Virus record (IMG/VR): IMGVR_UViG_3300036781_000418
Coordinates: 186,001 to 250,000 of that record
Length of the DNA stretch: 64,000 bases
Reading direction: 5' to 3' (one strand)
This document shows positions 602 to 30,061 of the stretch, piece after piece (the stretch's first letter is position 1; every line of letters starts with the position of its first letter). Below the pieces are notes generated by a model that worked only from the letters and a program-made list of their open reading frames with translations, had not been told where the DNA came from and searched no databases. Both the position numbers and the translations under genes were made by a program.

Positions 602-1219
602 ATGTCTGATGTGAACACAGCCCGAGAAAATGGCAAGAAGATCCTTCTGGTCTCTTCGCCAGTTCAAGCAATTCTGATGAACAAAGTGCTGATCGATGAG
701 ATTCGATCCGGCTTTTGGGCGAATCACCGACCATCCGGCCATGGTGATCACTGGACTGAAGTCGAAGCGATCGTGTCGACGGACGGTCAACTCGGTCCGA
801 TCAACTGGTCGGCACCACGCACCTACAACGTACTCAACCTCGACTTCTTCAACCCCAACGCTGACAAGCTCGTCGCGCTGGCCAAGTCCGTGAAGCCGAA
901 CTCCAACGAGCGCTCCGTCAAGAAGGAGCTCATCGAACTTGGTCGCATCATCGGCGGCCGCCTGGCTTCGCGCACCTCCGAGCCGATCAAGCTCGAACGC
1001 GGCAACCACAAGCCTGGCACCTTGACCGCCTCGGTCCGCAAAGCCCGTGAAGCTGGTTGCACCTTGGCCGACGTGATCGCCCTCTCGAAAAGCGGTACGG
1101 CCGCCGCGAGCGTGAAGCCGAAGACGACCACCGTCAAGAAGCGCGTTGAAGACGCGGGTCTCGAACTTACCGGTGCGATCGCTGGTCCGATCACCCACGT
1201 CGCCGCCCTCGCCGAGTAA
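602..1219 (+). CDS. hypothetical phage protein
   Basis: 205 aa ORF with the genome's codon bias, following a ~600 bp non-coding region. Confidence 0.7.
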   Translation: MSDVNTARENGKKILLVSSPVQAILMNKVLIDEIRSGFWANHRPSGHGDHWTEVEAIVSTDGQLGPINWSAPRTYNVLNLDFFNPNADKLVALAKSVKPNSNERSVKKELIELGRIIGGRLASRTSEPIKLERGNHKPGTLTASVRKAREAGCTLADVIALSKSGTAAASVKPKTTTVKKRVEDAGLELTGAIAGPITHVAALAE

Positions 1220-1289: not shown

Positions 1290-3350
1290 ATGGACTTTGC
1301 CATTTTCAAGGCGGCGGTCTCGAAGCGATTCGAGTTTCTCGCCAGGCACTCGCTGTTTCGCGTCAACCTCGACGCTGACAACGGTCAAGGCACGATCATC
1401 TCGGGCCGCGACCGCATCTGGGCAACCTACCTGAGCGCCTTTCCGGCCGGCGCGGACCCCATCTTCCGTGAACGCACGGAACACGACTGCAACTGCTGCA
1501 AGTCGTTCATCCGCGCGGTCGGCAACTGCGTCGCCATCGTGGACGGCAAGTTGGAAACCCTCTGGGACCTGAAGGTCAGCGATCCAAACTACCAGATCGT
1601 CGCCGACGCGATGGCCGCCTTCGTGCGCAACGGCAAGGTGACCGACATCTTCCTGCACATGGAGTCCACGGCTGGCCGTGACAAGACGTTTGAGCAAGTC
1701 CTCGGCGGCGAGAACATCACGTGGAACCACCTCGCTGTCACGCTGCCGCGCGACACGGTGGTGGACAAGCATGACATCCCGTCGACGCTGAACGGTCCGC
1801 GCGACGACCACCAAGTCCTGCACCGCTCGCTCACCGAGTTCAGTGTGGAAGCCTTGGACATCGTGCGTGAGCTCATCGCGCAGAACTCCCTTTACCGCGG
1901 TGAAGAGGACAAGTACGCCACGACCGAGTTCCACAAGCTGAAGACGGTGTTCGACACCCTGCTCACGGACCAGGCCAAGGACCTCTTCGTCTGGACGAAG
2001 GTCAAGGGCATCTCGGGCGCGGTCTCCCGCATCCGCAACTCGACGATCGGCACCCTGCTCATCGACCTCTCCGCCGGCGTCGAGCTGGACGTTGCGGTGG
2101 CCAAGTACGAGGACAAGAAGTCGGGCACGAAGTACAAGCGCCCCACCGCCCTCGTCACCAAGGGCATGATCGACAAGGCCAAGGAAACCCTGCAGAAGCT
2201 CGGCCTGGTCTCTGCGCTGGAACGTCGCTTCGCCGGTATCAGTGACATCACGGTCGACAACATCCTGTTCGCGGACCGCAGCGCCAAGGCCCTGATGGCC
2301 GACTCCATCATGGACGAGCTGACGCCGACGTCGAACACGCGTCCCAAGAACCTCGACAAGGTCGAGGAGGTGACGATGAACGGCTTCATCACCAACATCC
2401 TGCCGCACGTCAAGACCATCGAGGTGCTGTTGGAAAACCAGCATCTGACCAACATGGTCTCGCTCATCGCGCCTGGTGATCCGACGTCGGGCTCGCTCTT
2501 CAAGTGGGACAACCGCTTCAGCTGGTCCTACAACTCCGGTGTGGCGGACTCGATCAAGGAACGTGTGAAGAACGCCGGTGGTTCGGTCAACGGTGTCCTG
2601 TGCTGCCGCTTGGCCTGGGAATACTCCGACGACCTCGACTTCCACATGTACGAACCGTCGGGCGGCACGCACATCTCCTTCTCCAACAAGCGCCAGAAGT
2701 CCATCTGTGGCGGCATGCTGGACGTTGACGCCAACGGCGGCGACGGTCAACGCCCTGATCCGTGCGAGAACATCTTCTACGAAGACAAGTCCCGCATGAA
2801 GGAAGGCGACTACCGCCTCACCGTGCACAACTGGAACCGTCGCTCGGCGGGTATCGGCTTTGAGGCTCAAGTCGAGTTCGACGGCAAGACGTTCAACTTC
2901 TCCTACCCGCGTGTCGTCGCGGACAAGGAAGAGGTCAACATCGCGGTCATCAACTACTCGAAGACCGCTGGCTTCACCATCAAGTCGGACCTCGGCCAGA
3001 TCAACCTGTCCAAGGAGTTCTGGAACTTGAAGACCCAGAACTTCCACAAGGTCAACGTGCTGATGATGTCGCCCAACTACTGGGACGGCCAAGTCGGCGT
3101 CGGCAACAAGCACTACTTCTTCATGCTCGAGGACTGCCTCAACGACGGTTCCGCGCGTGGCATCTTCAACGAGTTCCTCAAGGATGAACTCAACCCGCAC
3201 CGCAAGGTCTTCGAGATGGTTGGCTCGAAGATCAACCTTGCCAGCACCGAGGCGCAGCTCAGCGGCCTTGGTTTCTCCTCAACCCTCAAGTCCCATGTCG
3301 TGGTTCGCGTTACCGGCGCGTTCACCCGCCTCATCAAGATCGTCTTCTAA
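1290..3350 (+). CDS. large conserved phage protein with a C-terminal YfaP/DUF2135-like segment
   Basis: AGGAG RBS; HDCNCCKSF Cys motif; LAWEYSDDLDFHMYEP..GGMLDVDAN..ENIFY resembles the YfaP-type signature. Confidence 0.6.
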   Translation: MDFAIFKAAVSKRFEFLARHSLFRVNLDADNGQGTIISGRDRIWATYLSAFPAGADPIFRERTEHDCNCCKSFIRAVGNCVAIVDGKLETLWDLKVSDPNYQIVADAMAAFVRNGKVTDIFLHMESTAGRDKTFEQVLGGENITWNHLAVTLPRDTVVDKHDIPSTLNGPRDDHQVLHRSLTEFSVEALDIVRELIAQNSLYRGEEDKYATTEFHKLKTVFDTLLTDQAKDLFVWTKVKGISGAVSRIRNSTIGTLLIDLSAGVELDVAVAKYEDKKSGTKYKRPTALVTKGMIDKAKETLQKLGLVSALERRFAGISDITVDNILFADRSAKALMADSIMDELTPTSNTRPKNLDKVEEVTMNGFITNILPHVKTIEVLLENQHLTNMVSLIAPGDPTSGSLFKWDNRFSWSYNSGVADSIKERVKNAGGSVNGVLCCRLAWEYSDDLDFHMYEPSGGTHISFSNKRQKSICGGMLDVDANGGDGQRPDPCENIFYEDKSRMKEGDYRLTVHNWNRRSAGIGFEAQVEFDGKTFNFSYPRVVADKEEVNIAVINYSKTAGFTIKSDLGQINLSKEFWNLKTQNFHKVNVLMMSPNYWDGQVGVGNKHYFFMLEDCLNDGSARGIFNEFLKDELNPHRKVFEMVGSKINLASTEAQLSGLGFSSTLKSHVVVRVTGAFTRLIKIVF

Positions 3351-3362
3351 AGGAGCTACTCC

Positions 3363-3770
3363 ATGTCTCTCGAAACTCTGTTGATCACCGCCGCCAAGGA
3401 CCAGTGGCGCTTCGCCTCCCCCAAGGGCGACCTCGCCCTGGAAGACCTGTTCGGCCTGTCGCTGCAGTCCAACACGGGCAAGGCCAACCTGAACGACATC
3501 GCCATCGGCCTGCACACGGAAGCCAGCGCTTCGTCCCAAGCCATCTCGTTCGTCGAGCCCGCCATCAAGAACAGCGACTTGCCGGCTCAGAAGCTCGAGC
3601 TGGTCAAGATGGTGATCGCCATCAAGGTCGGTGAACGCGACGCCGCCCTCGCTGCCAAGTCCAAGGCCGAGCAGCGCCAGAAGATCATGCAGCTGATCGA
3701 GGCCAAGAAGAACGAGGCCATGGCCGGCCAGTCGCTCGACGAGCTGACCGCCATGCTCGCCGCGCTGTAA
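3363..3770 (+). CDS. hypothetical coiled-coil phage protein
   Basis: AAGGAG RBS; 135 aa; helical C-terminus. Confidence 0.75.
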   Translation: MSLETLLITAAKDQWRFASPKGDLALEDLFGLSLQSNTGKANLNDIAIGLHTEASASSQAISFVEPAIKNSDLPAQKLELVKMVIAIKVGERDAALAAKSKAEQRQKIMQLIEAKKNEAMAGQSLDELTAMLAAL

Positions 3771-3771
3771 T

Positions 3772-3796
3772 ACGGCGACACGAGGCGACGCCGGTT
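3772..3796 (+). repeat. dispersed intergenic repeat ACGGCGACACGAGGCGACGCCGGTT (copy 1)
   Basis: Same core at 11026-11052(-), 16591-16615, 48495-48511 (partial), 48562-48584(-) and 59838-59857. Confidence 0.85.
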
Positions 3797-3991
3797 GCAA
3801 CGACCGGCTGGTTGCTTAAGGCACCACACCAAAGGGCGACGGCCACCACCGTCGCCCTTTCTGGCACCTGGAGCTGATCCCAAACATGGTCCCAATCTTT
3901 GGGACGCCCCTCGGCCGGCCGCGTTAAATAATTCAGTTAAGCCAACGCGAATAGACGCCGCGGATAACAACCGACAACGAGGAGGTCTCGA

Positions 3992-5134
3992 ATGTCAATC
4001 AAAGGAAAAGCACTTGTCCTTATCGGACGGTGTGAACCACCCCACCTAGGGCACATGCACCTAGTTGCTGAAGCGGCCAAGAAGGCCGAGTTCGTTATCC
4101 TACTGCTGGGAAGCAGTGGTCGACCACGCAACAACAAGAACCCCTTTACCTTTGAAGAGCGCGCGGAGATTTTCTCCACATGGGCCGCCCTCCAAGGTGG
4201 TGGACTGAAGGATCGGTTGTACGTCCTGCCGTTGCGCGACTTCATGTACAACAACAACCACTGGATCCACCAAGTTCAGCAGAAGGTCAAGCACGCGCGC
4301 GACTTGGCTGAGCTGGAGCATGGCTGCACGATCAACGAGGTTCGGCTCACGGGCTCGGACCGCGACTCAACCACGTGGTACCTTCACGCGTTTCCGCAGT
4401 GGCACACCAACTTCCTGCCGCCGTTCACGATGCCTGGAAACTCGGACGTCAACGCCACGGCGATCCGGGCCGCGCTCTTCAACGACCAGTCCGTTGGGCT
4501 GGAGACGCTGCATGAAATCACGGTCGACTTCCTCGTGAACTTCCGTTCAACGGACGAGTTCAAGACGTTGAAGGCCGAGTACGACTTCATGCGTGAGTAC
4601 ATGCGGCCGTACGCCACCCTGCACCACCCACCGACCTTCCAGACCGTCGACGCCGTGATCGTTCAATCAGGTCACACGTTGATGGTGAAGCGCGCCAACC
4701 TACCTGGCTTCGGGCTGTGGGCCCTGCCTGGTGGCCACCTCAACGTCGACGAGTGGATTCGTGACGCGATCGTCCGTGAGTCGATTGAGGAGACTGGCAT
4801 CTGCTTCGGCACTGGCTCACGCGCCCGTGAGTACACCGAGGAGTTCATGAAGTCTCGGATTCGCGAGCTCAAGACGTTCGACCACCCTGAGCGGTCGCTG
4901 CGCAAGCGGTCCATCACGACGGCCGGGTACATTCGGCTGGACGACACGAAGGCCCTGCCACACGTCACTGGACAGAACATGCCGCTCTACGAAACGGGTG
5001 GTGTGATCATTCCTGAAACGTCGAAGGCCGCGTGGATTCCAAACGTGCTGCTTCCCTCCATGATGAATGAGATCTTCGAGGACCACCTCGACATCATCGA
5101 GGACCTGCAAGGTGCGATCTACGGAGTCGTGTGA
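3992..5134 (+). CDS. nadM: bifunctional NMN adenylyltransferase / ADP-ribose pyrophosphatase (NadM-Nudix)
   Basis: GRCEPPHLGH (HxGH), KNPFTFEER, NATAIR, TVDAVIVQSGH and Nudix box GGHLNVDEWIRDAIVRESIEETG. Confidence 0.9.
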   Translation: MSIKGKALVLIGRCEPPHLGHMHLVAEAAKKAEFVILLLGSSGRPRNNKNPFTFEERAEIFSTWAALQGGGLKDRLYVLPLRDFMYNNNHWIHQVQQKVKHARDLAELEHGCTINEVRLTGSDRDSTTWYLHAFPQWHTNFLPPFTMPGNSDVNATAIRAALFNDQSVGLETLHEITVDFLVNFRSTDEFKTLKAEYDFMREYMRPYATLHHPPTFQTVDAVIVQSGHTLMVKRANLPGFGLWALPGGHLNVDEWIRDAIVRESIEETGICFGTGSRAREYTEEFMKSRIRELKTFDHPERSLRKRSITTAGYIRLDDTKALPHVTGQNMPLYETGGVIIPETSKAAWIPNVLLPSMMNEIFEDHLDIIEDLQGAIYGVV

Positions 5135-5502
5135 TGCTCTACTACCTCGCCGCCCCCTACACCCGCGTGGACGATCGTGAAGCGCTGATGCGCGACGTGA
5201 TGCGGTTCAGCGGTGAGCTGATGGTCAAAAACCCGGGACACCATGTCGTCTCACCGTTGTTCAACCACTACTCACTCAACCACGTTCCCGCCCTTGGCGT
5301 GGACTACAACTTTTGGAAGAGCTACTCGCAAGATCTTCTGAAGCGCTGCGACGCCTTGATCGTGCTGACCTACGACGGTTGGCTTGATTCGACTGGCGTC
5401 ACGGATGAAATCAACTTCGCGAGAAGCCTTGGACTGGTGGTACGGTTTGCCGCCCCATCTGAACTTGACCACTGGAAACTTACCCTCTCAACAGGAGAAT
5501 GA
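5131..5502 (+). CDS. DUF1937 / nucleoside 2-deoxyribosyltransferase-like protein
   Basis: YYLAAPYT...CDALIVL..GWLDSTGVTDEINFA pattern. Confidence 0.65.
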   Translation: MMLYYLAAPYTRVDDREALMRDVMRFSGELMVKNPGHHVVSPLFNHYSLNHVPALGVDYNFWKSYSQDLLKRCDALIVLTYDGWLDSTGVTDEINFARSLGLVVRFAAPSELDHWKLTLSTGE

Positions 5503-6179
5503 TGATGACTGCACCTGCAATGAACTTCCCTGGCGCCGACAAACTGATGTCGCGCTTCTTCCGCCCGGCTGAGGGCATCGTCTGGGACTTGATGTCCGGC
5601 AAAGTCGGTGTCCAAACCTCTGAGGGCATCGTGACTCTGTCGGGTGAGGGCGACGACGCTCAAATCTCGATCAACTTGCTCGACGATTTCGGCATGCCGC
5701 TGCCCGCCTTCGCTCAGTCCACCCCCGTCGACGCCATCAAGGTCGGTGACATCATCTACCGCGGCAAGCGCGAGACGGTCTCTTTCGTCATCAAGGCTGA
5801 AGACGGCAAGTTCCGCGTGATGAACGTGGACGGCACCTCCTCCGCCTGGTCGCCGCCGAAGGTCAACGTCCTTGGCTTCGACTCCGGCGTGATGGTCCTC
5901 CGCTCGCTGATGACCATGCTGCCGAACGGCGACAAGGGCCTGGGCCAGATGCAGTCGATGCTGCTGCCCATGATGATGATGGGCGGTGACAACGCCGACC
6001 TCGAGAAGCTGATGCCCCTGATGCTGATGTCCCAGACCGGCAACTTGGGCGGTGGCGCTGACGCCGGCGGCATGGGCAACATGATGCAGATGATGATGCT
6101 CATGAAGATGATGGGCGGTGACAAGGGCGGTACCCCGCTGCTCGGTGGTAAGGGTGGCAACCCTTTCAACCGCGGCTAA
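5499..6179 (+). CDS. hypothetical protein with Met/Gly-rich low-complexity C-terminus
   Basis: AGGAG RBS; repeated LPMMMM/MMQMMML blocks. Confidence 0.75.
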   Translation: MMMTAPAMNFPGADKLMSRFFRPAEGIVWDLMSGKVGVQTSEGIVTLSGEGDDAQISINLLDDFGMPLPAFAQSTPVDAIKVGDIIYRGKRETVSFVIKAEDGKFRVMNVDGTSSAWSPPKVNVLGFDSGVMVLRSLMTMLPNGDKGLGQMQSMLLPMMMMGGDNADLEKLMPLMLMSQTGNLGGGADAGGMGNMMQMMMLMKMMGGDKGGTPLLGGKGGNPFNRG

Positions 6180-6190
6180 CCGCTAAGACG

Positions 6191-6622
6191 GTGTTGGAGG
6201 AGCTGGAGGACGCGTACACCTCCAGCTTGATTCCACTCACCGATGCGGAAAGCCGAATGTTTTCCAGAGTCCTCATCGTCGGTACGAAGTACTACGACGG
6301 ACTCGCAGAGTACGACATGTTTGCGGAAGAGGACAAGTTCCTGTTCCTCCTGCCTGATGTGAAGAACCGCTACGACATCAACGCTGTCATGCTTCACAAC
6401 GGTAAAACCAGGATTGGTCACGTATCTCGAGGGGCTGGACTTTCGAGCATGTGTGAGCAGTTCAAGAGTTGGGGTGTACACCCCAAGGAGCGGACGGCCA
6501 ATACGGTGTTGGTCTGTAAGCTGGTAGCGCGCCTCGGCGAGGATCTGATCATCGCCGCCACGCATCGTGTTAATGAACGGAAAGCGCGTAAGTACGCGCA
6601 GTTGAAACTCAAAGGAGCCTAA
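6191..6622 (+). CDS. HIRAN-domain-like protein
   Basis: IVGTKYY...PDVKNRYDINAVMLH...RIGHV matches the HIRAN pattern; start codon uncertain. Confidence 0.6.
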   Translation: MLEELEDAYTSSLIPLTDAESRMFSRVLIVGTKYYDGLAEYDMFAEEDKFLFLLPDVKNRYDINAVMLHNGKTRIGHVSRGAGLSSMCEQFKSWGVHPKERTANTVLVCKLVARLGEDLIIAATHRVNERKARKYAQLKLKGA

Positions 6623-6624
6623 TC

Positions 6625-7515
6625 ATGGGTGCAGGAAGTTGGTCACGTGATGACTATGAAACGTATGCGACGACGACGAACTACGTCAAGGCCCCGCGGG
6701 CCGAGGTGTTCCGCAACAACCGCATCGTCGATTCGCTGAATCCGGCGAAGGCGCTGCTGCGCGAAAGCTGCGACAGCGCGGACAACCCCAACGCGACGCC
6801 GGTGATCATCGCCCTCGACGTGACGGGATCGATGGGCGAATACGCCGAGCGCATCGCCAAGCAGGCGCTGCCGAAGATCATGACGAGCATCATCGAGGGC
6901 AAGCCCATCAGCGACCCCCACGTCATGTTCATGGCCTTCTCGGACATCAACACGTCGGCCTACATGGACTCCTTCCAGGTGTCGCAGTTCGAAGCCGACA
7001 TCCGCGTGCTCGAGCAGCTGCGTGAAATCTACCTGGCTGGTGGCGGTGGTGGCAACGCCTCCGAGTCGTACGACCTGCCGTGGTACTTCGCCGGCACCCG
7101 CACGAAGACCGACGCGTTCGAAAAGCGCGGCAAGAAGGGCTTCCTCTTCACGATGGGCGATGAACGTGCACCGTACCAGGCTGTCAGCGCCTCCGACTTG
7201 AACCAAGTCTTCGGCGGCCAGCATGAAACCTTCATGCCAATTGAAGCCCTGGCACGGGCCAAGGAGAAGTACAACGTCTTCCACATCGTCATCGAGCAGG
7301 GCAGCGGCTGGCGCAACGACGAGACCGCCATCAAGCAGACATGGAACGCGATGCTTGGCTCCAACGTCCTGTACCTCCGCGACTTCACCCTCCTGCCCGA
7401 GGTGATCACCGCCACGATGCGCATGACCGACGGCTCGGTCACGATCAACGACGTGCTGGCTGAGTCCACCGACCGCCAGGAACTGGCCCACTGCTTCCAG
7501 AACATCCTGGGTTAA
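6625..7515 (+). CDS. vWA (MIDAS) domain protein
   Basis: IIALDVTGSMG (DxTxS), GGGGNASESY, FLFTMGDE. Confidence 0.85.
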   Translation: MGAGSWSRDDYETYATTTNYVKAPRAEVFRNNRIVDSLNPAKALLRESCDSADNPNATPVIIALDVTGSMGEYAERIAKQALPKIMTSIIEGKPISDPHVMFMAFSDINTSAYMDSFQVSQFEADIRVLEQLREIYLAGGGGGNASESYDLPWYFAGTRTKTDAFEKRGKKGFLFTMGDERAPYQAVSASDLNQVFGGQHETFMPIEALARAKEKYNVFHIVIEQGSGWRNDETAIKQTWNAMLGSNVLYLRDFTLLPEVITATMRMTDGSVTINDVLAESTDRQELAHCFQNILG

Positions 7516-7535
7516 GCAACCAACAGCGAGCAACC

Positions 7536-8750
7536 ATGAAAACAGCTTACGTAGTGATCGGCGCCGGCTTCGGCGATGAAGGCAAGGGTTTGATCACCGA
7601 CTACCTCACACGGCGTAGTGGTGGACGAGCGGTTGCTCGCTTCAACGGTGGCGCACAAGCTGGACACACCGTCCAGCTGCCCAACGGGGTGCGCCACGTC
7701 TTTGGACACTACGCGTCTGGCACCTTGGCCAACGCTAACACGATCCTGTCGAACAAGTTCATCGTCAACCCGTTCCTCCTGAAGAAGGAGCACGACGCGC
7801 TGGCGAAGATCACGAAGGGCCGCACCCAAGTCGCCGCGATGGCTGGAGCTCGGGTGACGACCTTCTACGACATGGTCCTCAACCAGCTTAAGGAACGCGC
7901 CCGCGGTAACGACCGCCACGGTTCCTGTGGCTGTGGCATCAACGAGACGGTCACCCGCCACGAAGAGCTTCCGCTTCGCGTCGGTGACCAGGTGTCGGAG
8001 TTCTACGCCGTCCACAAGGCGATGGCCGTCAAGCTCCACAACTACGTTGAGGCGAACAACCTCGACTGGCAAGCACTTGTCCGTGAAAACGGCTCGTTGG
8101 AGCTGGATCCGATCACGCACGCCTGGTCTGCCTACTCGACCATCCAAGACCTGATCGTCAAGGTCTCCGATCGACCAGCCCACCACCTGGTGCCGTCGGT
8201 CTTTGAAGGTGCGCAGGGCCTGATGCTCGACGAACACCTTGGCGCCTTTCCACACGTGACCCGCTCGATGACGGGCCTGCCGCAGGCGGTCGCCGCCGCG
8301 ATGGACATGGGTGTGGATCACCTGATTCCGGTGTACGTCACCCGAGCCTACTCCACGCGCCACGGTGCCGGGTTGTTCAAGTACGAGGACCAGCCGATCT
8401 CCGACGGCTTCGTCTTCGTCGACCCCACCAACGTGGACAACGAGTGGCAAGGCTCGATCCGCAAGGCCCCACTCCGACTTGGTCAACTCCAGCACTTCAT
8501 CGGTTCCGACCTGGTGCGTGGTGAACGGATCGCCGAAGCGTGTGGCGTCACCCTTGGCAAAGCCCAGCTTGCCGTCACGTGCCTTGACCAGCTCGGTCCA
8601 AACGTGAACGTGATCGACATGTTTGGCGAAGTGCTGGACATCAAGACCGAAACCCTCCACAACGTCATCGCGACGGTCTGTGCGTTGGAACCCTTCTTGC
8701 TCAGCTACGGTCCCACCAACCAGGATGTTCGAGTGGCGCCTCGCGTTTAG
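7536..8750 (+). CDS. purA: adenylosuccinate synthetase-like protein (divergent PurA clade)
   Basis: GAGFGDEGKG, RFNGGAQAGHT, FEGAQG, PHVTRS, TRHGAG. Confidence 0.8.
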   Translation: MKTAYVVIGAGFGDEGKGLITDYLTRRSGGRAVARFNGGAQAGHTVQLPNGVRHVFGHYASGTLANANTILSNKFIVNPFLLKKEHDALAKITKGRTQVAAMAGARVTTFYDMVLNQLKERARGNDRHGSCGCGINETVTRHEELPLRVGDQVSEFYAVHKAMAVKLHNYVEANNLDWQALVRENGSLELDPITHAWSAYSTIQDLIVKVSDRPAHHLVPSVFEGAQGLMLDEHLGAFPHVTRSMTGLPQAVAAAMDMGVDHLIPVYVTRAYSTRHGAGLFKYEDQPISDGFVFVDPTNVDNEWQGSIRKAPLRLGQLQHFIGSDLVRGERIAEACGVTLGKAQLAVTCLDQLGPNVNVIDMFGEVLDIKTETLHNVIATVCALEPFLLSYGPTNQDVRVAPRV

Positions 8751-8844
8751 AATGAAGTATGAGGTAAGTTTGTCGTCCACCTCGTTAAGGACGACTTGAC
8801 CGACGCGACCGACGCTTAGGTCCTATGGATAGAGAGGTTCTACC

Positions 8845-10377
8845 ATGCAGACAATTATTCCCAAGAACGACGTCCTCGACGCCTCCAGAATGCGTCGTCG
8901 CGCCACCCCCGCCAAGCCACCGTTGCGCTTCAACATGGTGCTAGCCGCGGACTCCTACAAGTTCTCCCACCCGTTCTCGTACCCCAAGAACATCAGCGGC
9001 TTGTTCTCGTACATCGAGGCCCGGACACATGGTGCACACATCATGATTCCGGCCGGCTTCGAGGCCACGTTGCAGCGCTACCTGTCGGTGCCCATCACGA
9101 TGGAGGACATCGACGAGGCCGAGGCCTTCATGAAGCGCCACGGCGAACCGTTCGCCCGGAACGTCTGGGAGCACGTCCTCACCAAGTACCACGGCTACCT
9201 GCCCGTGATCATCCGTGCCGTGCCTGAGGGAACTCCCGTCAAGAGCAGCAACATCATGGTGTCGATCATGTGCGTCGACGAGCTGGTCGCCGAGAACATC
9301 TTCTGGCTGGCCTCCTTCCTTGAGACCTTCCTGCTCCGTGCCGTCTGGTACCCTACCACGCTGGCCACCAACGATTACGAGTCGAAGCTCGAGATCAAGC
9401 GCTTCTACAAGATTGCCGGTGAGGACCTTGCCGGCATCGACTTCGCCGTCCACTGCTTTGGCGCTCGAGGTACGACCTGTCACGAGCAAGCCGAGATCGC
9501 CGGTGTCCACGCCTTCATGTACAAGGGCTCGGACACGGTTGAGGGCATTCGCTACGTCAACCACTACTACGACTGCGAGATGGCCGCGTTCTCCGTGCCC
9601 GCCACCGAACACTCGGTCGCCACGTCGTTCGGGCTGACGAGTGAAGACGAAGTCCGCTACATCGACCATCAGCTGACGGCGTTCGCGAAGCAAGGTGCGA
9701 TCATCTCGCTGGTGGCCGACTCCAAGGACACGTCGCGCTTCGTGGATCACATCTGCACGACGTTCCATGACCGCATCGTCGACCTCCATGAACGGCTTGG
9801 TGTGAAGGTTGTCGTCCGTCCAGACAGCGGCGATCCGCTTGAGATCGTGCCGATGATCTTGGACAAGCTGGCCAAGGCCTTCCCGACCACTCGCACCGTG
9901 CACGGCTACATCAAACTGTACGGCGGCGTTGGTATCCTACAAGGTGACGGCGTCGACACCATGCTGATCAAGACGTTGCTCGGCAACATCATGGCCCGCA
10001 ACTACTCGCCTGCAAACATCATCTTCGGTTCGGGCGGTGCGCTCCTGCAGAAGGTTAACCGTGACACGCACAAGTGGGCGCAGAAGGGCAGCGCCATCTT
10101 GGTGAGGACTCCTGTCGCGGTCGGCGCGCACGGTGGCACCTTCACGTACGCGTGGCAAGGCATCGCCAAGGACCCCATCACCGACCCTGGCAAGAAGTCG
10201 AAGGAAGGTCTCCTGACCCTGATGCGGAACTCCTTCACCGGCCAGTACGCCACCATCCGCATCGACAAGGATCCGGTGAAAGACGAGTGGGTGGACGTGA
10301 TGGAGGACATCTACGACTGTGGACAGTTCTTCAACCTGTCCAACATGGACCAAATCCGCACACGCTGCGCCATCTGA
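8845..10377 (+). CDS. nadV: nicotinamide phosphoribosyltransferase (NAMPT)
   Basis: ADSYKFSH, SYIEAR, VWYPTT, FGARG, VPATEHS, VVRPDSGDP, LQGDG, FGSGGALLQKVNRDT, KDPITDPGKKSK. Confidence 0.93.
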   Translation: MQTIIPKNDVLDASRMRRRATPAKPPLRFNMVLAADSYKFSHPFSYPKNISGLFSYIEARTHGAHIMIPAGFEATLQRYLSVPITMEDIDEAEAFMKRHGEPFARNVWEHVLTKYHGYLPVIIRAVPEGTPVKSSNIMVSIMCVDELVAENIFWLASFLETFLLRAVWYPTTLATNDYESKLEIKRFYKIAGEDLAGIDFAVHCFGARGTTCHEQAEIAGVHAFMYKGSDTVEGIRYVNHYYDCEMAAFSVPATEHSVATSFGLTSEDEVRYIDHQLTAFAKQGAIISLVADSKDTSRFVDHICTTFHDRIVDLHERLGVKVVVRPDSGDPLEIVPMILDKLAKAFPTTRTVHGYIKLYGGVGILQGDGVDTMLIKTLLGNIMARNYSPANIIFGSGGALLQKVNRDTHKWAQKGSAILVRTPVAVGAHGGTFTYAWQGIAKDPITDPGKKSKEGLLTLMRNSFTGQYATIRIDKDPVKDEWVDVMEDIYDCGQFFNLSNMDQIRTRCAI

Positions 10378-10379
10378 TC

Positions 10380-10406
10380 AAGGGAGCTTCGGCTCCCTTC
10401 CTTCTT
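10380..10406 (+). terminator. putative intrinsic terminator
   Basis: AAGGGAGC-TTCG-GCTCCCTT hairpin right after nadV, followed by a pyrimidine run. Confidence 0.65.
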
Positions 10407-10416
10407 GGAGCTCACC

Positions 10417-10617
10417 ATGATCGTCCTTCTCATCGTCACCAAGCACGTCACCAAAGCCGGTGATGTGGCCGGCATGAACTGCCTTGTTCATGAGACGGAT
10501 CCGTACACCGCCAACATGATGAAGGCTGGCGCGCAAGAGCACAACCGCGGCAAGCCAGGCGTTGTCCGAAGCGAAATGACGACTGTGGAGATCATTGAGC
10601 TCGCCAACACCAACTAG
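10417..10617 (+). CDS. hypothetical protein
   Basis: GGAG RBS before ATG 10417. Confidence 0.55.
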   Translation: MIVLLIVTKHVTKAGDVAGMNCLVHETDPYTANMMKAGAQEHNRGKPGVVRSEMTTVEIIELANTN

Positions 10618-10743
10618 GAGTTGCTCCATGGACCAGAAGTTCGACGACTTGGACGCCGCGTTTCTCACGGCCTGCATCATGTACATCGTGCTGTTTGCGT
10701 TCTGGTGCATTGACACGGACAAGCTGAAAGATCGGATTAAGAG

Positions 10744-10989
10744 ATGGCTGAAAAGATGACCGCACAGCAGATCATTGCGGTGTTGCTGATGAACCAGGGC
10801 ATGGCCCTGCACAACGCCTCCAGCGTGATCGGTGCGAGCGAGATTTTCGAACTTGAGCGACGTGACCTGGCCTACCGTTCGGTCACGTCGCAGACCTGGC
10901 ACTACTCCAAGCTCACGCACTCCGGCGTTGAGCTCGCCCGGAAATTCCTGAACACCGAGCTGCCGAAACGCATCGGTGCACCCGAGTAG
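10744..10989 (+). CDS. hypothetical protein
   Basis: ORF in a co-directional gene run. Confidence 0.5.
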   Translation: MAEKMTAQQIIAVLLMNQGMALHNASSVIGASEIFELERRDLAYRSVTSQTWHYSKLTHSGVELARKFLNTELPKRIGAPE

Positions 10990-11071
10990 GCACCGTTGTA
11001 GGGCGCCTCACGTTATATGATCGAATGCAACCGACGACGCCTCGTGTCGCCGAAACTATGAGGTCGATGAG

Positions 11072-11344
11072 ATGAATACCGCGTTCACCAAGCTGTTCTT
11101 CCTTCACAACTCCGGCGTTCTGCCGGCCCCGACTCCTGAACAGACGGCCAGCGACTACTTCAAGTCGCTGATGAACGTGGAGATCATCCAGGCAACTGGC
11201 GAGAAGAAGGTGATTGGTGAAGCCTACGGCTACCATGAGCTCATGGACTTCTCGAAGCGGCTGATCCTCATCACGCGCATCGACACCGCGGACATGGACG
11301 AACTCCGCGGTATCCTCAAGGAAGTTATCAAGGAACTGACATGA
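11072..11344 (+). CDS. hypothetical protein
   Basis: ORF with ATGA coupling to the next gene. Confidence 0.6.
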   Translation: MNTAFTKLFFLHNSGVLPAPTPEQTASDYFKSLMNVEIIQATGEKKVIGEAYGYHELMDFSKRLILITRIDTADMDELRGILKEVIKELT

Positions 11345-13928: not shown

Positions 13929-14005
13929 GCGCCCATAGCTCAGCGGTCCAGAGCAACTTGCTTCAAACTTGTTGGTCCTCGGTTCGAATCCGAGTGGGCG
14001 CACCA
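13929..14005 (+). tRNA. tRNA with UCA anticodon (opal-reading), copy 2
   Basis: GCGCCCA/TGGGCGC-ACCA; anticodon arm ACTTG-CTTCAAA-CTTGT with two U-U mismatches. Confidence 0.78.
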
Positions 14006-14025
14006 TCAACCTAACGAGGCTTGCC

Positions 14026-14481
14026 ATGCTACCCGCCGTCTGCGTGCTTATCCAGCACCACCAAGACAAGGACTTCTACATCGCCGTCTCGCGTCGCGAC
14101 GACCCCTCCCACTGGGGGCTGCCTGGCGGCAAGGACGACGATGAACACGAGTCGAACATTGAAGCCGCCCAGCGTGAGTGCAACGAGGAGATCGGCATCC
14201 TCGCCGCCCTAACGTCCTTCGAGCCCATGTACGTGGGACTTTGTCCGGGTGACGTGAACTTCTGGGTGACCACCTACGCGTTCATGGACCCTGAGCCGAT
14301 CCACTTCGACGAGCTCGTGGCCGAGAAAGGCCTGGTCGTCGAGTGGAAGTCCGAGCAAGACCTCTGTGATCCGAAGTTGACGCCCTTCGCGGCCTACAAC
14401 GTCGAGGTCTTCAAGTCGCTCCGCAACCGTTGGCCAAGTGGCGTGATTCCAGTTCCTGGTGTCTCCTACTTCAAGGGCTGA
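14026..14481 (+). CDS. Nudix hydrolase
   Basis: WGLPGGK..ESNIEAAQRECNEEIG Nudix box; GAGG RBS before ATG 14026. Confidence 0.85.
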   Translation: MLPAVCVLIQHHQDKDFYIAVSRRDDPSHWGLPGGKDDDEHESNIEAAQRECNEEIGILAALTSFEPMYVGLCPGDVNFWVTTYAFMDPEPIHFDELVAEKGLVVEWKSEQDLCDPKLTPFAAYNVEVFKSLRNRWPSGVIPVPGVSYFKG

Positions 14482-17550: not shown

Positions 17551-18077
17551 CTTCGTTTATCGGCGCTGACCATGAAGCTCAGGATCGGTCGTTGGGCTGG
17601 CCCTGAGCTTCCAGCTGGTGCCACTTTTTCACGCCAACCATGCTCAAGCTGCTTGTCAAGCTCGGCCTTCGTGGCGGCGGCCATGTCAATCTTAAACAGA
17701 CCGCCAACCAGCTGGTGCGACCACTTGTTGAACAAGTTAGCTGGAGGTACGAACACGTAGCGCCCAGCGGCGACTAGTGATTCAAGGTACTCATTGATCG
17801 CCTTCTTAGCTCCCTTGAAGCGCAACTCAGCTGGAAGATAGTCTTGTGGGTTGTCATGCTCGTTACCCCAGCCTGCAATGCTGGTCAACTCACAGTCAAA
17901 CATGATGCACTCCCAGAACTCACCATCACCAAGTAGCGAACGTTCGCTCCCGTTGGTGGATGAGCGCTTCAGGTCATAGCGCTCAAGCAGGCGGTGGAGT
18001 GCGATTGATACTTCCTGCCTAACGTAAGGGAGCTGATCGGCTCCACGCTTCTGCATGTGAATTTCGCGTAGCTTCAT
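17547..18077 (-). CDS. hypothetical protein, last gene of the AAA/vWA operon
   Basis: TAATG-coupled to the vWA gene; ADQLPY motif resembles the paralog family at 22729-25806. Confidence 0.65.
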   Translation of the reverse strand: MKLREIHMQKRGADQLPYVRQEVSIALHRLLERYDLKRSSTNGSERSLLGDGEFWECIMFDCELTSIAGWGNEHDNPQDYLPAELRFKGAKKAINEYLESLVAAGRYVFVPPANLFNKWSHQLVGGLFKIDMAAATKAELDKQLEHGWREKVAPAGSSGPAQRPILSFMVSADKRS

Positions 18078-19867
18078 TAGAAGTGGCTGATGAGGGCGCC
18101 GCCCATACCGAGTTGACGAACGATAGAGTCGTAGGTGCCCACACCGTCGAAGATCGCGCCGAACTGCGATGGGTGCCCCTTGATCAGCTTCTTCAGCGTG
18201 GCGAAGTTTGCGCCTTCGGCCATGTCTGAGTCTGACATGACGATGACGTTGTACTTCTTACGGAGCAGAATTTCCAACTGGCCCGCCAAGTCATCGGTGA
18301 AGTTGGTCGCGCCACCTTGGTGCTCCTTGAACACGTGGTCCAAGCTGAACGAGGTACCGCCACCGCCTTCGTCGGCCTCAGAGGCCGACTTCAGCTTGAT
18401 GGCTGAGCCACCTGAGCCAGAGACTGTGCAGCGGTAGAACGTGTAATCGTCGGAGAACTCGCAGACGATGAACGTCTTGGCGACGCTCGACTGCTTTGAC
18501 GCCTCACGTGCGTTGGCCAACACCTTGTCGATGTGGGTGCCCATGGAACCAGACGAGTCGATGACGAGGCAGAGCTTGACCTTCTGGGCTGGCACGACGA
18601 CCTCACCTGGCTTGACGGCCGCGGCGCCAGTCTTCTGAACCATGTCGATCGAGGTGATGTTGCGACGGTGGACCTTCTGGTAGGTCGTCTCCGTCGTGTC
18701 GGACGAGCGCATCAGGCGGTCCAGCAGCGCGCGCCAGTTGTAGCGTGGCTTGACGGCCTGAACTTCACGGCGTGCGCCGGAGTTGTTACCTTGGCCACCC
18801 TTACTGGCGGTGTTCGTCTTTGGATCGGGCCCGTCTTGGGCACCGTCTTCGTGTTCACCCGCCGCCTTGCTGGTCTTCTTGGAGTGGTTCTCCATGTCGC
18901 TTTCAGACGGGGCTTCACCGGTGCGCGGATCCTCTTGGTTGTCCGAGTCGATGTGATCGTCCGTCAGGTCACCCAGCTGCTGCTCAACCTGCTTCTGTTG
19001 TGGCTTCGTCAGCTTGTCGAACTCAGACTTAACAAGCTCGTACATCTCACGGTAGGTGAGCTGGCGGTCGTAGTTGATCAGGTCGTTGAACAACCCCATC
19101 GGCAGCGGTTGGTGTCCAGCCTTCGTCAGGTCGTAGTTGGAGCGGAAGTCACCAGTCCAGTTGTGGATCAGTGGCGAGCCGCCCATCACCTTCATGTGGT
19201 GGAAGTCGCCGTGCGTGTAGTGGTAGAACTCGTGCAGAATCAGGAACTCAAGGGTCGAGTATTCGTTTGGAAACTCACCACCGTTGGCCTCGTACTTCTT
19301 GGACTTCGGCTTGATCTTTTGGGCGTGCGCGAAGTTCAGCAGGGTCTGCATGAACGGCACGTTGAAGATGAACTCGCCGTTGCCCGTCGCGGCCGCCGTG
19401 TCGACGTCCTTGAACTGCTTGTTGTCCTTCTCATCGTCGCCTGGAATCAAGATGATACGTGGCGAGATGATTGGCTTCTTGTTGTAGTAGTTCCGAAGCG
19501 GGAAGATCGAGCGGTTCTCGGCCTTCACACGACGGACGAGCTTGGAGAACAGCACTGGTGAGAACTGTGGACCGCTGTTGTCGGCGTGCTGGCCTTCTTT
19601 GCGAGCGTCCGAATAGCGCTTGAACAGCTCCTGCTCAATGATGTTCTTTTGGATTGAGTGGTACAGGATCGGCGCCTTCGTCGCGATCGAGCTGAACTTC
19701 GCCGCCTTCGCGTCGATCTCGTCCTTGATCACCGACTCCTTTTTGCCCTCAAGCTGGGCGAGGTACGAGAGCGCCGCCTTGATGCGCGCGTCGGCCCAGG
19801 TCGACTGCGGGGAGACCGTGTCGACCTTGGCCTTGATGTTGTTGATCATCTCGGCTTCATTGATCAC
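18077..19867 (-). CDS. metallopeptidase-vWA fusion (DUF2201-like), MoxR partner
   Basis: ILHEFYH (HExxH); acidic/Gly linker; LVIDSSGSM MIDAS; GGATNF; VMSDSD. Confidence 0.85.
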   Translation of the reverse strand: MINEAEMINNIKAKVDTVSPQSTWADARIKAALSYLAQLEGKKESVIKDEIDAKAAKFSSIATKAPILYHSIQKNIIEQELFKRYSDARKEGQHADNSGPQFSPVLFSKLVRRVKAENRSIFPLRNYYNKKPIISPRIILIPGDDEKDNKQFKDVDTAAATGNGEFIFNVPFMQTLLNFAHAQKIKPKSKKYEANGGEFPNEYSTLEFLILHEFYHYTHGDFHHMKVMGGSPLIHNWTGDFRSNYDLTKAGHQPLPMGLFNDLINYDRQLTYREMYELVKSEFDKLTKPQQKQVEQQLGDLTDDHIDSDNQEDPRTGEAPSESDMENHSKKTSKAAGEHEDGAQDGPDPKTNTASKGGQGNNSGARREVQAVKPRYNWRALLDRLMRSSDTTETTYQKVHRRNITSIDMVQKTGAAAVKPGEVVVPAQKVKLCLVIDSSGSMGTHIDKVLANAREASKQSSVAKTFIVCEFSDDYTFYRCTVSGSGGSAIKLKSASEADEGGGGTSFSLDHVFKEHQGGATNFTDDLAGQLEILLRKKYNVIVMSDSDMAEGANFATLKKLIKGHPSQFGAIFDGVGTYDSIVRQLGMGGALISHF

Positions 19868-28318: not shown

Positions 28319-28319
28319 G

Positions 28320-28736
28320 ATGAAGCTCAACATCCTACTGGAAGACGACATGTCACATGAGGACATCATGGACGTGCTTGAACTCATCAAGAAGAAGTTT
28401 GAGCGGACGTACGAGGTTGAGATAGACAAGGAAGTCCCACGGCTGATCTTCTACATCGCCTCAACGAAGGACTTTCCGTTTGATGATGACGATCGCGTTG
28501 GTGAGGACTTTGCGGTCAAGGTTGGTCGCGTTGCCGGCAACTGGGCGATCATGTCAAAGGTTCCAAACGGTACGACCCCACAAAGCCGGGGTCGTACGAA
28601 CATCATTGAGGTTGATGAGGACGGCAAGATCATTCCACAGCTTGAACAGATTCTGCCGAAGTTGGTCAAGGACCTGAAGCGGCTGGAAGCCGACAACCAT
28701 TGGAAGATTGAATGGTGCGACAACCATGAAGCTTGA
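28320..28736 (+). CDS. hypothetical protein with MKLNILLE N-terminus
   Basis: Shared N-terminal motif. Confidence 0.65.
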   Translation: MKLNILLEDDMSHEDIMDVLELIKKKFERTYEVEIDKEVPRLIFYIASTKDFPFDDDDRVGEDFAVKVGRVAGNWAIMSKVPNGTTPQSRGRTNIIEVDEDGKIIPQLEQILPKLVKDLKRLEADNHWKIEWCDNHEA

Positions 28737-28763
28737 AAACCTAAATGAGGAACTGTTCGACGT

Positions 28764-29183: not shown

Positions 29184-29460
29184 AGACCCAGTCCCGAGAA
29201 AAGTGGGCGAACTTTTTGGCGCTTCGCTAAATAGGCGATACAATTACAACTTACGCTGCTTCATTGCAGCACGGGAAGAAACTTCAAATGTCGGTTCTAG
29301 GTTATTCAGTCACATCGTTGCCAGTCAGTGGACTCGGTTGCGGCGCGCCTGCATATGCCTCCCCGCTTACGAGGGCTCTCGGTTAGAAAGTTAGTTTACT
29401 AACATGATTACCGAGGGCCTAGACGAAAGTTTAGGCCCTCGATTGTTATGTGTGCTTTGT

Positions 29461-29806: not shown

Positions 29807-29809
29807 TTG

Positions 29810-29957: not shown

Positions 29958-29966
29958 TTTTTCTGT

Positions 29967-30052: not shown

Positions 30053-30061
30053 AGTTTAGAT

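Follow-up and report, generated by a model that had tools for sequence, protein, structure and literature searches.

The region described here lies in a 343-kb phage, within a window of 64,000 nucleotides (positions 186,001 to 250,000 of IMG/VR record IMGVR_UViG_3300036781_000418). Seven co-directional genes are found at positions 3992-10377 of this window, in the order nadM-Nudix, DUF1937, Met-rich, HIRAN-like, vWA, PurA-like and nadV. The genes almost abut, with gaps between neighbours of -4, -4, 11, 2, 20 and 94 bp. The features and the evidence for each of them are listed in Table 1.

Table 1. Genes and sequence features at positions 3992-10377 of the window
Position	Strand	Feature	Evidence
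3992..5134	+	nadM-type bifunctional NMN adenylyltransferase/Nudix (NMNAT half of NARP2)	Pfam CTP_transf_like (residues 10-64) and NUDIX (218-270); phrog_395, E 5e-56; NF003786 250 bits, below the 397 equivalog cut-off
5131..5502	+	DUF1937/nucleoside 2-deoxyribosyltransferase-like protein	PF09152, E 2e-9; phrog_355
5499..6179	+	Met-rich protein: all-beta N-terminal domain (residues ~21-136) and Met/Gly-rich helical tail	Translation and alignment; AF2 model with pLDDT ~85 for the N-domain, no PDB fold match
6191..6622	+	HIRAN-like small protein	PF08797, E 2e-4, 21.5 bits, below the 24.7 cut-off
6625..7515	+	vWA-fold protein with an intact MIDAS site	No Pfam hit; phrog_2971; AF2 pLDDT 91.4; Foldseek hits to integrin beta-I/vWA domains, prob 1.0, TM 0.4-0.5
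6625..6642	+	N-terminal motif M-G-x-x-x-W of the vWA protein (Gly2 codon at 6628-6630)	AAGGAG 8 nt upstream of the ATG
6817..6831	+	MIDAS motif D65-x-T-G-S69 of the vWA protein	Invariant columns D65, T67, G68, S69
7045..7071	+	Further MIDAS element GGGGNxxESY	Invariant columns G141, G142, N144, E147, Y149
7150..7164	+	Further MIDAS element TxGDE	Invariant columns T176, G178, D179
7536..8750	+	PurA-like (adenylosuccinate-synthetase-family) ligase of a separate clade	PF00709 covers residues 6-284 only, E 4e-40; phrog_1211
7572..7589	+	P-loop G13-D-E-G-K-G18, catalytic Asp14 retained	Sequence and clade alignment
7656..7670	+	QAGHT, containing His44	Sequence and clade alignment
7920..7958	+	Clade-specific loop G-S-C-G-x-G-I-N-E-T-V-T-R, replacing G-T-T-G-R-G-I-G-P-A-Y-E-D (IMP 5'-phosphate loop) of PurA	Invariant columns; alignments to PurA
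8445..8462	+	Clade-specific W304-Q-G-x-x-R309, aligned to the aspartate loop T300-T-G-R-R-R305 of PurA	Profile-profile alignment (hhalign); invariant or near-invariant columns
8577..8591	+	T-C-L-D-Q, aligned to the guanine-specificity motif T-K-L-D-V of PurA; Asp kept, Lys replaced by an invariant Cys	Profile-profile alignment; clade alignment
8703..8705	+	S390, aligned to Ser414 of PurA	Profile-profile alignment; clade alignment
8845..10377	+	nadV nicotinamide phosphoribosyltransferase (NAMPT half of NARP2)	Pfam NAMPT_N and NAPRTase; phrog_448, E 2e-114; NF006629 421 bits against a 405 cut-off

A sequence-only reading of this DNA had reported an NAD salvage pair enclosing five co-directional genes, and that observation is confirmed, although the inner genes were listed in a scrambled order. 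It had also treated the five inner genes as one cassette, which they are not. A homologue of DUF1937 lies near the module in only 3 of 83 phage loci, and HIRAN homologues are found in 7-10 of the 83, sitting in the same position, between the Met-rich and vWA genes, in 8-10 loci. Both are lineage-specific passengers. The counterpart of the HIRAN-like protein in Rhizobium phage TM40 is a GenBank 'hypothetical protein' carrying GO terms for nucleic-acid and zinc binding.

The outer pair matches the published phage NARP2 pathway, NAMPT plus NMNAT, as found for example in Vibrio phage KVP40 (PMC13464706; bioRxiv 10.1101/2024.02.11.579819), and has its domain architecture. NARP2 as published is a two-gene pathway that works without extra genes, whereas here five further genes are inserted between the two. 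The same nadM ... nadV bracket recurs in independent contigs at 40-47% protein identity (L004, L005 and L010/L011 in our set of phage loci).

The real unit within the bracket is the vWA gene together with the PurA-like gene. A vWA gene lies directly upstream of the PurA-like gene in 80/83 phage loci and in 75/80 bacterial loci, most of the bacterial exceptions lying at contig ends. When we started from vWA instead, 78/79 loci held a PurA-like gene, and no locus with enough downstream DNA lacked it. The median gap between the two genes is 18 bp in phages, with 11 overlapping stop/start pairs. This linkage is far beyond chance. The sequence-only reading had named a linkage that is not conserved, together with a plain IMP-aspartate ligase with no defence phenotype, as what would refute it, and with the linkage conserved that refutation fails.

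A third gene precedes the pair. It is a J-domain/kinase-like protein in 54/80 bacterial and 23/83 phage loci, or a Met-rich protein (the type found here or a second Met-rich type) in about 42/83 phage loci. The kinase-like partner lacks the catalytic Asp and the DFG motif, and its J-domain carries an invariant HPD motif that suggests Hsp70 recruitment. A subclade of shorter phage enzymes (~350 aa) lacks both kinds of third partner. The module is not phage-specific and is shared by hundreds of large phages and bacteria. In bacteria, NrtR-family regulators (Nudix plus NrtR_WHD), an ADP-ribose-sensing type, are adjacent in 21/80 loci, and 15 of the 21 lie on the opposite strand. These regulators score below the NCBIfam cut-off (137-149 bits against 400) and a search for the canonical GT-N7-AC operator core did not find it, so that their ligand may not be ADP-ribose. 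In phages, nadV lies within 8 kb in 18/83 loci, and the vWA-PurA-like pair is found with NARP2 genes in only about a fifth of phage loci.

The PurA-like enzyme belongs to the same fold family as adenylosuccinate synthetase PurA (EC 6.3.4.4) of the bacterial long type. A profile-profile alignment gives probability 100 over the full length, and in a profile search against PDB, E. coli PurA is the best solved relative (E 1e-36). It is nevertheless not a housekeeping PurA. It scores 108-122 bits against PurA equivalog cut-offs of 395-402 in NCBIfam, and in a tree its clade of 136 sequences is separated from canonical PurA, with phages and bacteria interleaved. In 5 of 5 bacteria tested, a canonical PurA scoring 509-589 bits co-exists with the PurA-like gene, which scores 99-141 bits.

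An alignment of the clade gives 80+ invariant columns and allows the active site to be compared with that of E. coli PurA. D13, K16, H41, Q224 (the GAQG Gln), T239, D333 and S414 (the Ser of the SxGP motif) are kept, covering the P-loop, the catalytic Asp/His and the guanine-binding Asp/Ser. The changes are N38 to Q, T128/T129 to S/C, S240 to R, V273 to H, T300/T301 to W/Q, R303 to a variable residue and K331 to C, while R143 aligns to a gap. The positions that we assign to binding of the IMP 5'-phosphate (N38, T128/T129, R143) and of L-aspartate (V273, T300/T301, R303) are thus largely replaced by other, invariant or near-invariant residues, and the phosphate pocket gains invariant Arg/His residues (R127, H128, R141, H240, R243, H276). 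The C-terminal part of this comparison rests on a profile-profile alignment at low identity.

The enzyme is also not PurZ, the succino-amino-deoxyadenylate synthase of Z-genome phages, as the sequence-only reading had stated from the retained GDEGKG. Both are PurA-family paralogues carried by phages, with a changed substrate in PurZ and an inferred change of substrate here, and PHROGs lumps them together in phrog_1211, labelled '2-aminooxy adenylosuccinate synthetase'. However, the protein scores 41.8 bits against the 300 cut-off of the PurZ model, and PDB PurZ chains score only E 1e-6 to 1e-2. PurZ descends from the short archaeal type (343 aa in phiVC8), and phiVC8 PurZ has GSTGKG in place of GDEGKG, with Ser replacing the P-loop Asp. 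PurZ lacks the guanine-binding Asp, yet it still uses aspartate and keeps N38, T129 and the TT..RR loop; the clade described here shows the opposite pattern at the P-loop Asp, the guanine-binding Asp and the aspartate loop. Searches of the complete phage genome found no DatZ homologue (best E 0.31) and no second PurA-family gene.

The vWA fold and the MIDAS site of the partner are confirmed by its predicted structure and its conserved MIDAS motifs. Its N-terminus is Met-Gly in 39/40 phage and 70/72 bacterial homologues, that is 109/112 across many phyla, with a bacterial consensus of MGxxRWxxxDW and strong Shine-Dalgarno sites fixing the start. Structure prediction of the complex between the enzyme and the vWA protein gave weak support for an interaction. 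The median score is 0.47 against a best control of 0.00. The mark was reached by 58 of 80 solved complexes and 2 of 110 mismatched pairs, but at 0.60 or under it was reached by only 7 of those 80 solved complexes and by both mismatches that passed. The runs agree in at least 35% of contacts and the partner's pLDDT is at least 74, but no interface was obtained, so nothing places the vWA N-terminus in the active site.

We see two separate things in this span: a NAD+ reconstitution pair of a known kind and, between its two genes, a member of a widespread and apparently undescribed module, for which we found no paper in the literature. The analysis establishes the near-obligate and reciprocal pairing, the separation of the clade from PurA and PurZ, the co-existence with canonical PurA in bacteria, the pattern of kept and replaced residues, and the linkage to NrtR regulators in bacteria and to nadV/nadM in phages. 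The function, by contrast, is inferred from sequence and predicted structure alone. We infer that the enzyme, probably not doing the normal job of PurA, still uses GTP to phosphorylate a lactam oxygen of a purine-type nucleotide and then displaces the phosphate with an amine, that neither the nucleotide pocket nor the amine is that of PurA, and that it works in complex with the vWA protein.

Our preferred explanation, which we hold only tentatively, is that the ligase joins a purine nucleotide to an amine other than free aspartate. Its most specific form is speculative and held with slightly less confidence: the amine would be the free alpha-amino group of the vWA partner's N-terminal glycine, exposed after Met removal, and the product would be the vWA protein linked through N6 to a purine nucleotide, with the J-domain or Met-rich partner then delivering or handling the protein. 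The precedent is the QueC family (Cap9 in type IV CBASS; QatC-QatB), in which a paralogue of a nucleotide-biosynthesis enzyme, encoded next to its partner, modifies the partner's N-terminal glycine (PMC13279940; bioRxiv 10.1101/2025.04.06.647259). There too the partner has a strongly conserved N-terminal Met-Gly motif (MGTS in QatB; MGxxRW here), and the ancestral chemistry activates an oxygen and couples it to an amine. The enzyme folds are unrelated, however (PP-loop ATPase against P-loop AdSS), the partner here is a vWA/MIDAS protein, and the context is NAD/ADP-ribose genes and lytic phages rather than defence islands. The conserved Met-Gly could also serve another purpose, such as docking, stability or start-codon context.

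A small-molecule version of this chemistry is possible, though we consider it somewhat less likely. The enzyme would make a free nucleotide metabolite from an amine other than aspartate and a 6-oxopurine substrate larger or more charged than IMP, such as a hypoxanthine dinucleotide like deamino-NAD, an IDP-ribose-type compound, or a di- or triphosphate, and the product would feed or signal NAD/ADP-ribose homeostasis. The vWA protein, with the J-domain or Met-rich partner, would act as adaptor or activase for the enzyme, as vWA adaptors do for other enzymes. The kept catalytic core and GTP-base residues, the invariant Arg/His residues of the phosphate pocket, the adjacency to NrtR and nadV/nadM and the HPD motif all fit this view, and vWA proteins as peptide-binding co-chaperones are discussed in PMC9503650 and PMC7824862. 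In vWA adaptor systems such as MoxR/AAA+ with vWA, or vWA-kinase-phosphatase triads (PMC7824862), a MIDAS-bearing vWA protein is likewise encoded in an operon with an NTPase-type partner and a chaperone-related or kinase-like protein, although here there is no AAA+ ATPase and the NTPase is an AdSS-family ligase. This version does not explain the near-invariant Met-Gly of the vWA protein, and no downstream lyase (PurB) is encoded in the phage, although the host has one.

The sequence-only reading had proposed that the enzyme may restore adenine nucleotides after ATP deamination or depletion, or ligate an amino acid to a different nucleotide; overall, its interpretation is partly supported. The NARP2 assignment, the exclusion of PurZ and the vWA linkage hold, and the evidence points toward ligation to a different substrate. 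A plain, if divergent, IMP-aspartate ligase that boosts or restores AMP/ATP pools during infection, with vWA as a mere neighbour, is unlikely: the PF00709 match and the retained catalytic residues fit it, and NAD resynthesis consumes ATP and PRPP, but the low equivalog scores, the replaced residues that PurZ keeps, the normal purA in bacteria and the reciprocal vWA linkage speak against it. About equally unlikely is a bacterial anti-phage defence system, borrowed by phages for inter-phage competition, in which the enzyme would make a toxic or signalling nucleotide. The distribution is patchy with repeated phage-bacterium exchange, the QueC-type precedents are defence systems and an ADP-ribose-type sensor is adjacent. 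Yet none of the components hits PADLOC, the bacterial neighbourhoods hold ordinary housekeeping or signalling genes rather than defence islands, and the module is fixed in whole lytic phage groups (201 mycobacteriophage records) and embedded in phage NAD salvage operons, both of which fit a pro-phage role. A PurZ-like or other DNA-base modification pathway, such as 2-aminoadenine or another purine hypermodification, is very improbable; it is suggested only by the phrog_1211 label and by the HIRAN-like protein, of a DNA-end-binding type, two genes upstream in this sub-lineage, and is countered by the differences from PurZ, the lack of DatZ and the presence of the module next to NrtR in bacterial chromosomes.

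As to its role, a point against our preferred explanation is that the two KVP40 NARP2 genes suffice to counter Thoeris and DSR2 without this module (bioRxiv 10.1101/2024.02.11.579819). Our inference is that the module is switched on under, or serves, NAD/ADP-ribose stress, which would be why phages with NAD salvage carry it.

The window is bases 186001-250000 of a single-contig virus record of 342,591 bp, which has direct terminal repeats and is rated 100% complete. The virus is a jumbo phage, with only short DNA matches, at 60-80% identity, to Caulobacter, Rhizobium, Stenotrophomonas and Vibrio phages. The seven genes of interest are separated by gaps of -4, -4, 11, 2, 20 and 94 bp, and their coordinates are collected in the table together with those of the other features observed. 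A consensus scan found no promoter-like site on the + strand within 3300-11200, and no more terminator-like sites than in shuffled sequence. The observation made in the sequence-only reading, of a nadM-Nudix and nadV pair bracketing five co-directional genes, is therefore correct, apart from the gene order given in its title (vWA, PurA-like, Met-rich, DUF1937, HIRAN).

Coordinates of the features described (window coordinates unless stated otherwise)
Feature	Coordinates	Strand	Remarks
205-aa protein	602-1219	+	No family match; homologues (42-62% identity) recur 5-7 kb upstream of the PurA-like gene, before nadM, in 6 viral loci
Two conserved proteins of unknown function	1290-3350 and 3363-3770	+	phrog_1735, 686 aa; phrog_2018, 135 aa; just upstream of nadM
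nadM-Nudix	3992-5134	+	Adenylyltransferase (cytidylyltransferase-like) + Nudix architecture
DUF1937 / deoxyribosyltransferase-like protein	5131-5502	+	
Met-rich protein	5499-6179	+	No Pfam or NCBIfam hit above threshold
HIRAN-like protein	6191-6622	+	PF08797, 21.5 bits, E 2e-4, just under the gathering score of 24.7
vWA protein (predicted fold)	6625-7515	+	No Pfam hit
PurA-like protein	7536-8750	+	PF00709 covers only residues 6-284 of 404
nadV	8845-10377	+	NAMPT_N + NAPRTase; phrog_448, E 2e-114
Stand-alone second Nudix hydrolase	13969-14481	+	PF00293, E 4e-9; 3.6 kb downstream of nadV
851-aa AAA+-type ATPase followed by a 596-aa protein with an HNH-endonuclease match	18077-22419	-	ATPase: phrog_1297, weak 'porphyrin biosynthesis'/CobS-like phrog_249; AT skew inverts here (18-22 kb)
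Region of lower G+C	28001-34000		0.50-0.52, against 0.56-0.60 elsewhere in the window
NinI-like Ser/Thr phosphatase and tRNA nucleotidyltransferase	53735-54802 and 55732-56835	+	phrog_246; phrog_2244, E 3e-93
Two J-domain proteins	333673-333834 and 337948-338085 of the phage contig (G000:C1), outside the window		DnaJ 53 and 40 bits; open frames of 290 and 284 aa

The outer pair corresponds to the published NARP2 pathway, in which a NAMPT-type phosphoribosyltransferase and an NMN adenylyltransferase rebuild NAD+. NadV passes the cut-off of its NCBIfam model, NF006629 (421 bits against 405), whereas NadM-type models score 250 bits, below the equivalog cut-off of 397 but with full-length alignment. 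In Vibrio phage KVP40, the two genes alone overcome Thoeris and DSR2 (bioRxiv 10.1101/2024.02.11.579819; PMC13464706). Restoration of NAD+ and the overcoming of NAD-depleting defence have been shown for the KVP40 genes only, and for the genes in this phage they are inferred from their families. This part of the locus is already known in kind.

The gene directly upstream of the PurA-like gene encodes a protein that no Pfam model detects, but whose assignment as vWA in the sequence-only reading is right. Its AlphaFold2 model is confident (pLDDT 91.4, pTM 0.91), and the top Foldseek matches in the PDB are integrin beta-I and other vWA domains (probability 1.0, E 4e-6, TM 0.4-0.5). An alignment of 40 homologues shows three invariant elements of the MIDAS site, namely D65-x-T-G-S69, a GGGGNxxESY loop and T176-x-G-D179, the last followed by Glu. 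These were read by eye against the textbook motif (DxSxS ... T ... D).

The conserved unit within the bracket is the vWA gene together with the PurA-like gene. A tblastn search with the PurA-like protein finds 238 phage records, including 201 mycobacteriophages of the Bxz1/Catera group, 10 Rhizobium phages and 6 Vibrio phages, and in representatives of all three groups a vWA homologue lies just upstream. In IMG/VR, 526 stretches encode a relative. Of the 80 best of these loci plus the three reference phages, 80/83 have the vWA gene directly upstream. Among bacterial genomes sampled at one per species, 564 stretches encode a relative, and 75 of the 80 best loci have the pair, with most of those lacking it lying at contig ends. 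Starting instead from the vWA protein, 78 of 79 viral loci have the PurA-like gene, and no locus with enough downstream DNA lacks it. The median spacing is 18 bp in phages, with frequent stop/start overlaps. Lack of conservation of this linkage had been named beforehand as a ground for rejecting the sequence-only reading, and the linkage is clearly conserved. In one viral contig (locus L024), homologues of the two conserved proteins found just upstream of nadM in the window lie directly upstream of a PurA-like gene for which no vWA homologue was detected. The other inner genes are not part of the core, since DUF1937 accompanies the pair in 3/83 loci and HIRAN in 7-10/83. The HIRAN-like protein of the window, although below the Pfam gathering score, shows an N-x-Y-D-x-N-A-V core in its translation.

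Upstream of the vWA gene, there is usually a third protein of one of two kinds. In bacteria (54/80) and some phages (23/83, including Catera gp249), it is a protein of ~345 aa with a J-domain, detected as DnaJ hits of only 19-27 bits against a cut-off of 27.8 but with an invariant W-H-P-D motif. Its C-terminal domain resembles a kinase, a label that rests on the GenBank 'kinase' annotation of Catera gp249 and on motif resemblance. Kinase activity is doubtful, as the consensus lacks the HRD Asp and the DFG motif. In about 42/83 phage loci, including this window, the third protein is instead a Met-rich protein of two related types, with an all-beta N-domain and a Met/Gly-rich tail. Its N-domain has no PDB match at E <= 0.001, a protein atlas search returned only unnamed viral clusters, and it has no known fold or family. 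Neither the vWA, the Met-rich nor the kinase-like protein has a Pfam or NCBIfam hit above threshold. The J-domain/kinase-like partner is absent from this phage, whose two J-domain proteins lie elsewhere in the genome and are unrelated to it by BLAST. A phage subclade with shorter PurA-like proteins of 347-361 aa (loci L031, L034, L035, L037, L039, L044, L061, L066, L069 and L077) still has the vWA gene upstream, but has neither a Met-rich nor a J-domain partner.

The enzyme is not PurZ. The clade profile hits E. coli PurA at 1e-36 but PurZ chains in the PDB only at E 2e-6 to 9e-3, and the PurZ model NF038379 gives 41.8 bits against a cut-off of 300. The protein has GDEGKG where phiVC8 PurZ has GSTGKG, and the complete phage genome has no DatZ homologue, the best tblastn hit having an E of 0.31. 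Nevertheless, members of the clade are labelled '2-aminooxy adenylosuccinate synthetase' (PurZ) in PHROGs (phrog_1211) and in PHROGs-derived annotation of RefSeq phage records, for example Catera gp252 in NC_008207. Nothing here indicates that these phages have a Z-genome pathway, so this is likely to be a systematic misannotation.

Nor is it an orthologue of PurA. It scores 107.6 and 121.9 bits against the equivalog cut-offs of 395.6 (TIGR00184) and 402 (NF002223), and the match covers only profile positions ~1-282. In a FastTree phylogeny, 136 clade members separate from canonical PurA (support 99/89). Phage and bacterial sequences are interleaved, so several exchanges must have occurred, although the tree was rooted at the midpoint and we make no claim about the direction of transfer. 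In all five bacterial genomes tested, a canonical PurA (509-589 bits) coexists with the PurA-like gene (99-141 bits). Searches of the phage genome found no second PurA-family gene and no PurB.

Thirty-five clade members share about 80 invariant positions, so the protein is under strong selection and is not a decaying copy. We mapped these positions onto Salmonella/E. coli PurA using HMMER, MAFFT and hhalign. The P-loop (G13-D-E-G-K-G18, with the catalytic Asp13 of PurA) and H44, equivalent to His41 in the (N)AGHT motif, are invariant in the clade, and Lys16, Gln224 and Thr239 are also kept. In PurA, the IMP 5'-phosphate is bound by N38, T128/T129 and R143 of the partner subunit. Here N38 becomes Q41, the GTTGRGIGP loop becomes GSCGxGINE, and R143 aligns to a gap. 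L-aspartate is recognised in PurA by V273, T300/T301 and R303. Here V273 becomes H276, T300 becomes W304, T301 becomes Q305 and R303 is variable, so that the T300-T-G-R303 loop reads W-Q-G-x, and only R305 is kept, as R309. Ser240 becomes Arg. Of the residues that recognise the GTP base (K331, D333 and S414), the Asp and Ser are kept and invariant as D351 and S390, while K331 is replaced by the invariant C349. As an internal control, PurZ, which still uses aspartate, shows the opposite pattern, keeping Asn38, Thr129 and the TT..RR loop while losing Asp13 and Asp333.

The vWA protein begins with Met-Gly in 39/40 phage and 70/72 bacterial homologues (consensus MGxxRWxxxDW). Strong Shine-Dalgarno sites fix the start codon, and in the window AAGGAG lies 8 nt upstream. 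Such conservation of residue 2 across about ten phyla is unusual. It recalls the QueC-family systems, in which Cap9 conjugates a deazaguanine to the N-terminal glycine of its partner, and the related QatC-QatB system, in which the N-terminal MGTS motif of QatB is essential for defence (PMC13279940; bioRxiv 10.1101/2025.04.06.647259). The comparison is an analogy in how the proteins might work, as the enzyme here belongs to PF00709 and not to the QueC family (PF06508). The nucleophile of PurA is an alpha-amino group, and a peptide N-terminal glycine would need exactly the loss of carboxylate-binding residues that is seen here. A structure prediction for the complex of the window's pair gave only weak support and reported no interface. 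The median score was 0.47 against a best control of 0.00. The mark was reached by 58 of 80 solved complexes and 2 of 110 mismatched pairs. At 0.60 or under, however, it was reached by only 7 of those 80 solved complexes and by both mismatches that passed. The runs agree in at least 35% of contacts, and the partner's pLDDT is at least 74.

The module is also found beside genes related to NAD and ADP-ribose. In 21 of 80 bacterial loci, it is flanked by an NrtR-family regulator (Nudix + NrtR_WHD winged helix), with 15 of the 21 lying on the opposite strand. As the genomes are one per species and such regulators are rare, we estimate that chance adjacency should be well under one locus in 80. NrtR proteins sense ADP-ribose and control NAD synthesis and salvage (PMC2330246), although the regulators found here score 137-149 bits to the ADPR-responsive repressor model NF050029, below its cut-off of 400. 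The published 21-bp operator core, GT-N7-AC, was not found in the regulator-operon intergenic regions. Lineage-specific perfect or near-perfect palindromes are visible by eye between the NrtR-like gene and the module in six loci (L094, L116, L130, L150, L155 and L158), for example TTAGTA-N6-TACTAA in L116 and CTTAGACG-N7-CGTCTAAG in L155. These are candidate operators, picked without statistical support, and do not fit the published core. In phages, nadV lies within 8 kb in 18/83 loci, mostly in the window's own Met-rich-type clade, and one bacterial locus has nadM immediately downstream. No component of the module matches PADLOC. The literature searched, including the NARP papers, the NrtR paper and comparative-genomics papers, holds no description of the pair. 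The NrtR paper does list an unexplained NrtR-controlled two-gene operon, nrtX-nrtY, in Streptomyces, Frankia, Proteus and Hahella (PMC2330246, Table 1), which may or may not correspond to it.

Taken together, inside a known NARP2 pair sits a member of a large, apparently undescribed module, consisting of a third partner, then vWA, then an adenylosuccinate-synthetase-family ligase, which is shared by bacteria and large phages. The gene linkage, the separateness of the enzyme clade, its coexistence with canonical PurA and the pattern of kept and replaced residues rest on direct sequence comparison, whereas everything mechanistic, including the reaction catalysed, is inference. We infer that GTP-dependent activation of a lactam oxygen is retained, but that both the nucleotide pocket and the amine nucleophile differ from those of PurA. 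Our best explanation, which remains tentative, is a neofunctionalised ligase acting with, and possibly on, its vWA partner under NAD/ADP-ribose stress. The more specific idea, that an adenylosuccinate-synthetase-family enzyme has been converted into a protein-modifying ligase, using GTP to attach a purine nucleotide through C6/N6 to the N-terminal glycine of its vWA partner, is our preferred specific mechanism but more speculative still, given the weak complex prediction. If true, it would be a new kind of nucleotide-protein conjugation, controlled in bacteria by an ADP-ribose-type sensor and used by large phages alongside NAD+ reconstitution. The main rival, a small-molecule product, is somewhat less likely than our best explanation and is itself no more than a possibility. 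The interpretation offered in the sequence-only reading is thus only partly supported. The NAD salvage pair and the distinction from PurZ hold, but the five enclosed genes are not one cassette, and the plain reading that the enzyme restores adenine nucleotides is unlikely. The finding is real and of more interest than that reading proposed, but for a different reason.

The NAD salvage pair is already understood, whereas the pair inside it is not. The vWA and PurA-like module, counted by relatives of its enzyme, occurs in more than 500 viral contigs, among them all cluster C mycobacteriophages found here and T4-like Rhizobium and Vibrio phages, and in more than 500 bacterial species representatives from about ten phyla, and it is annotated in databases as 'adenylosuccinate synthetase' or as PurZ. 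If it is shown to be a distinct enzyme system tied to NAD/ADP-ribose stress, a widespread misannotation would be corrected and a new player would be added to the NAD-centred conflict between phages and their hosts. If the protein-modification reading holds, a second enzyme family would be known that writes nucleotides onto protein N-termini.
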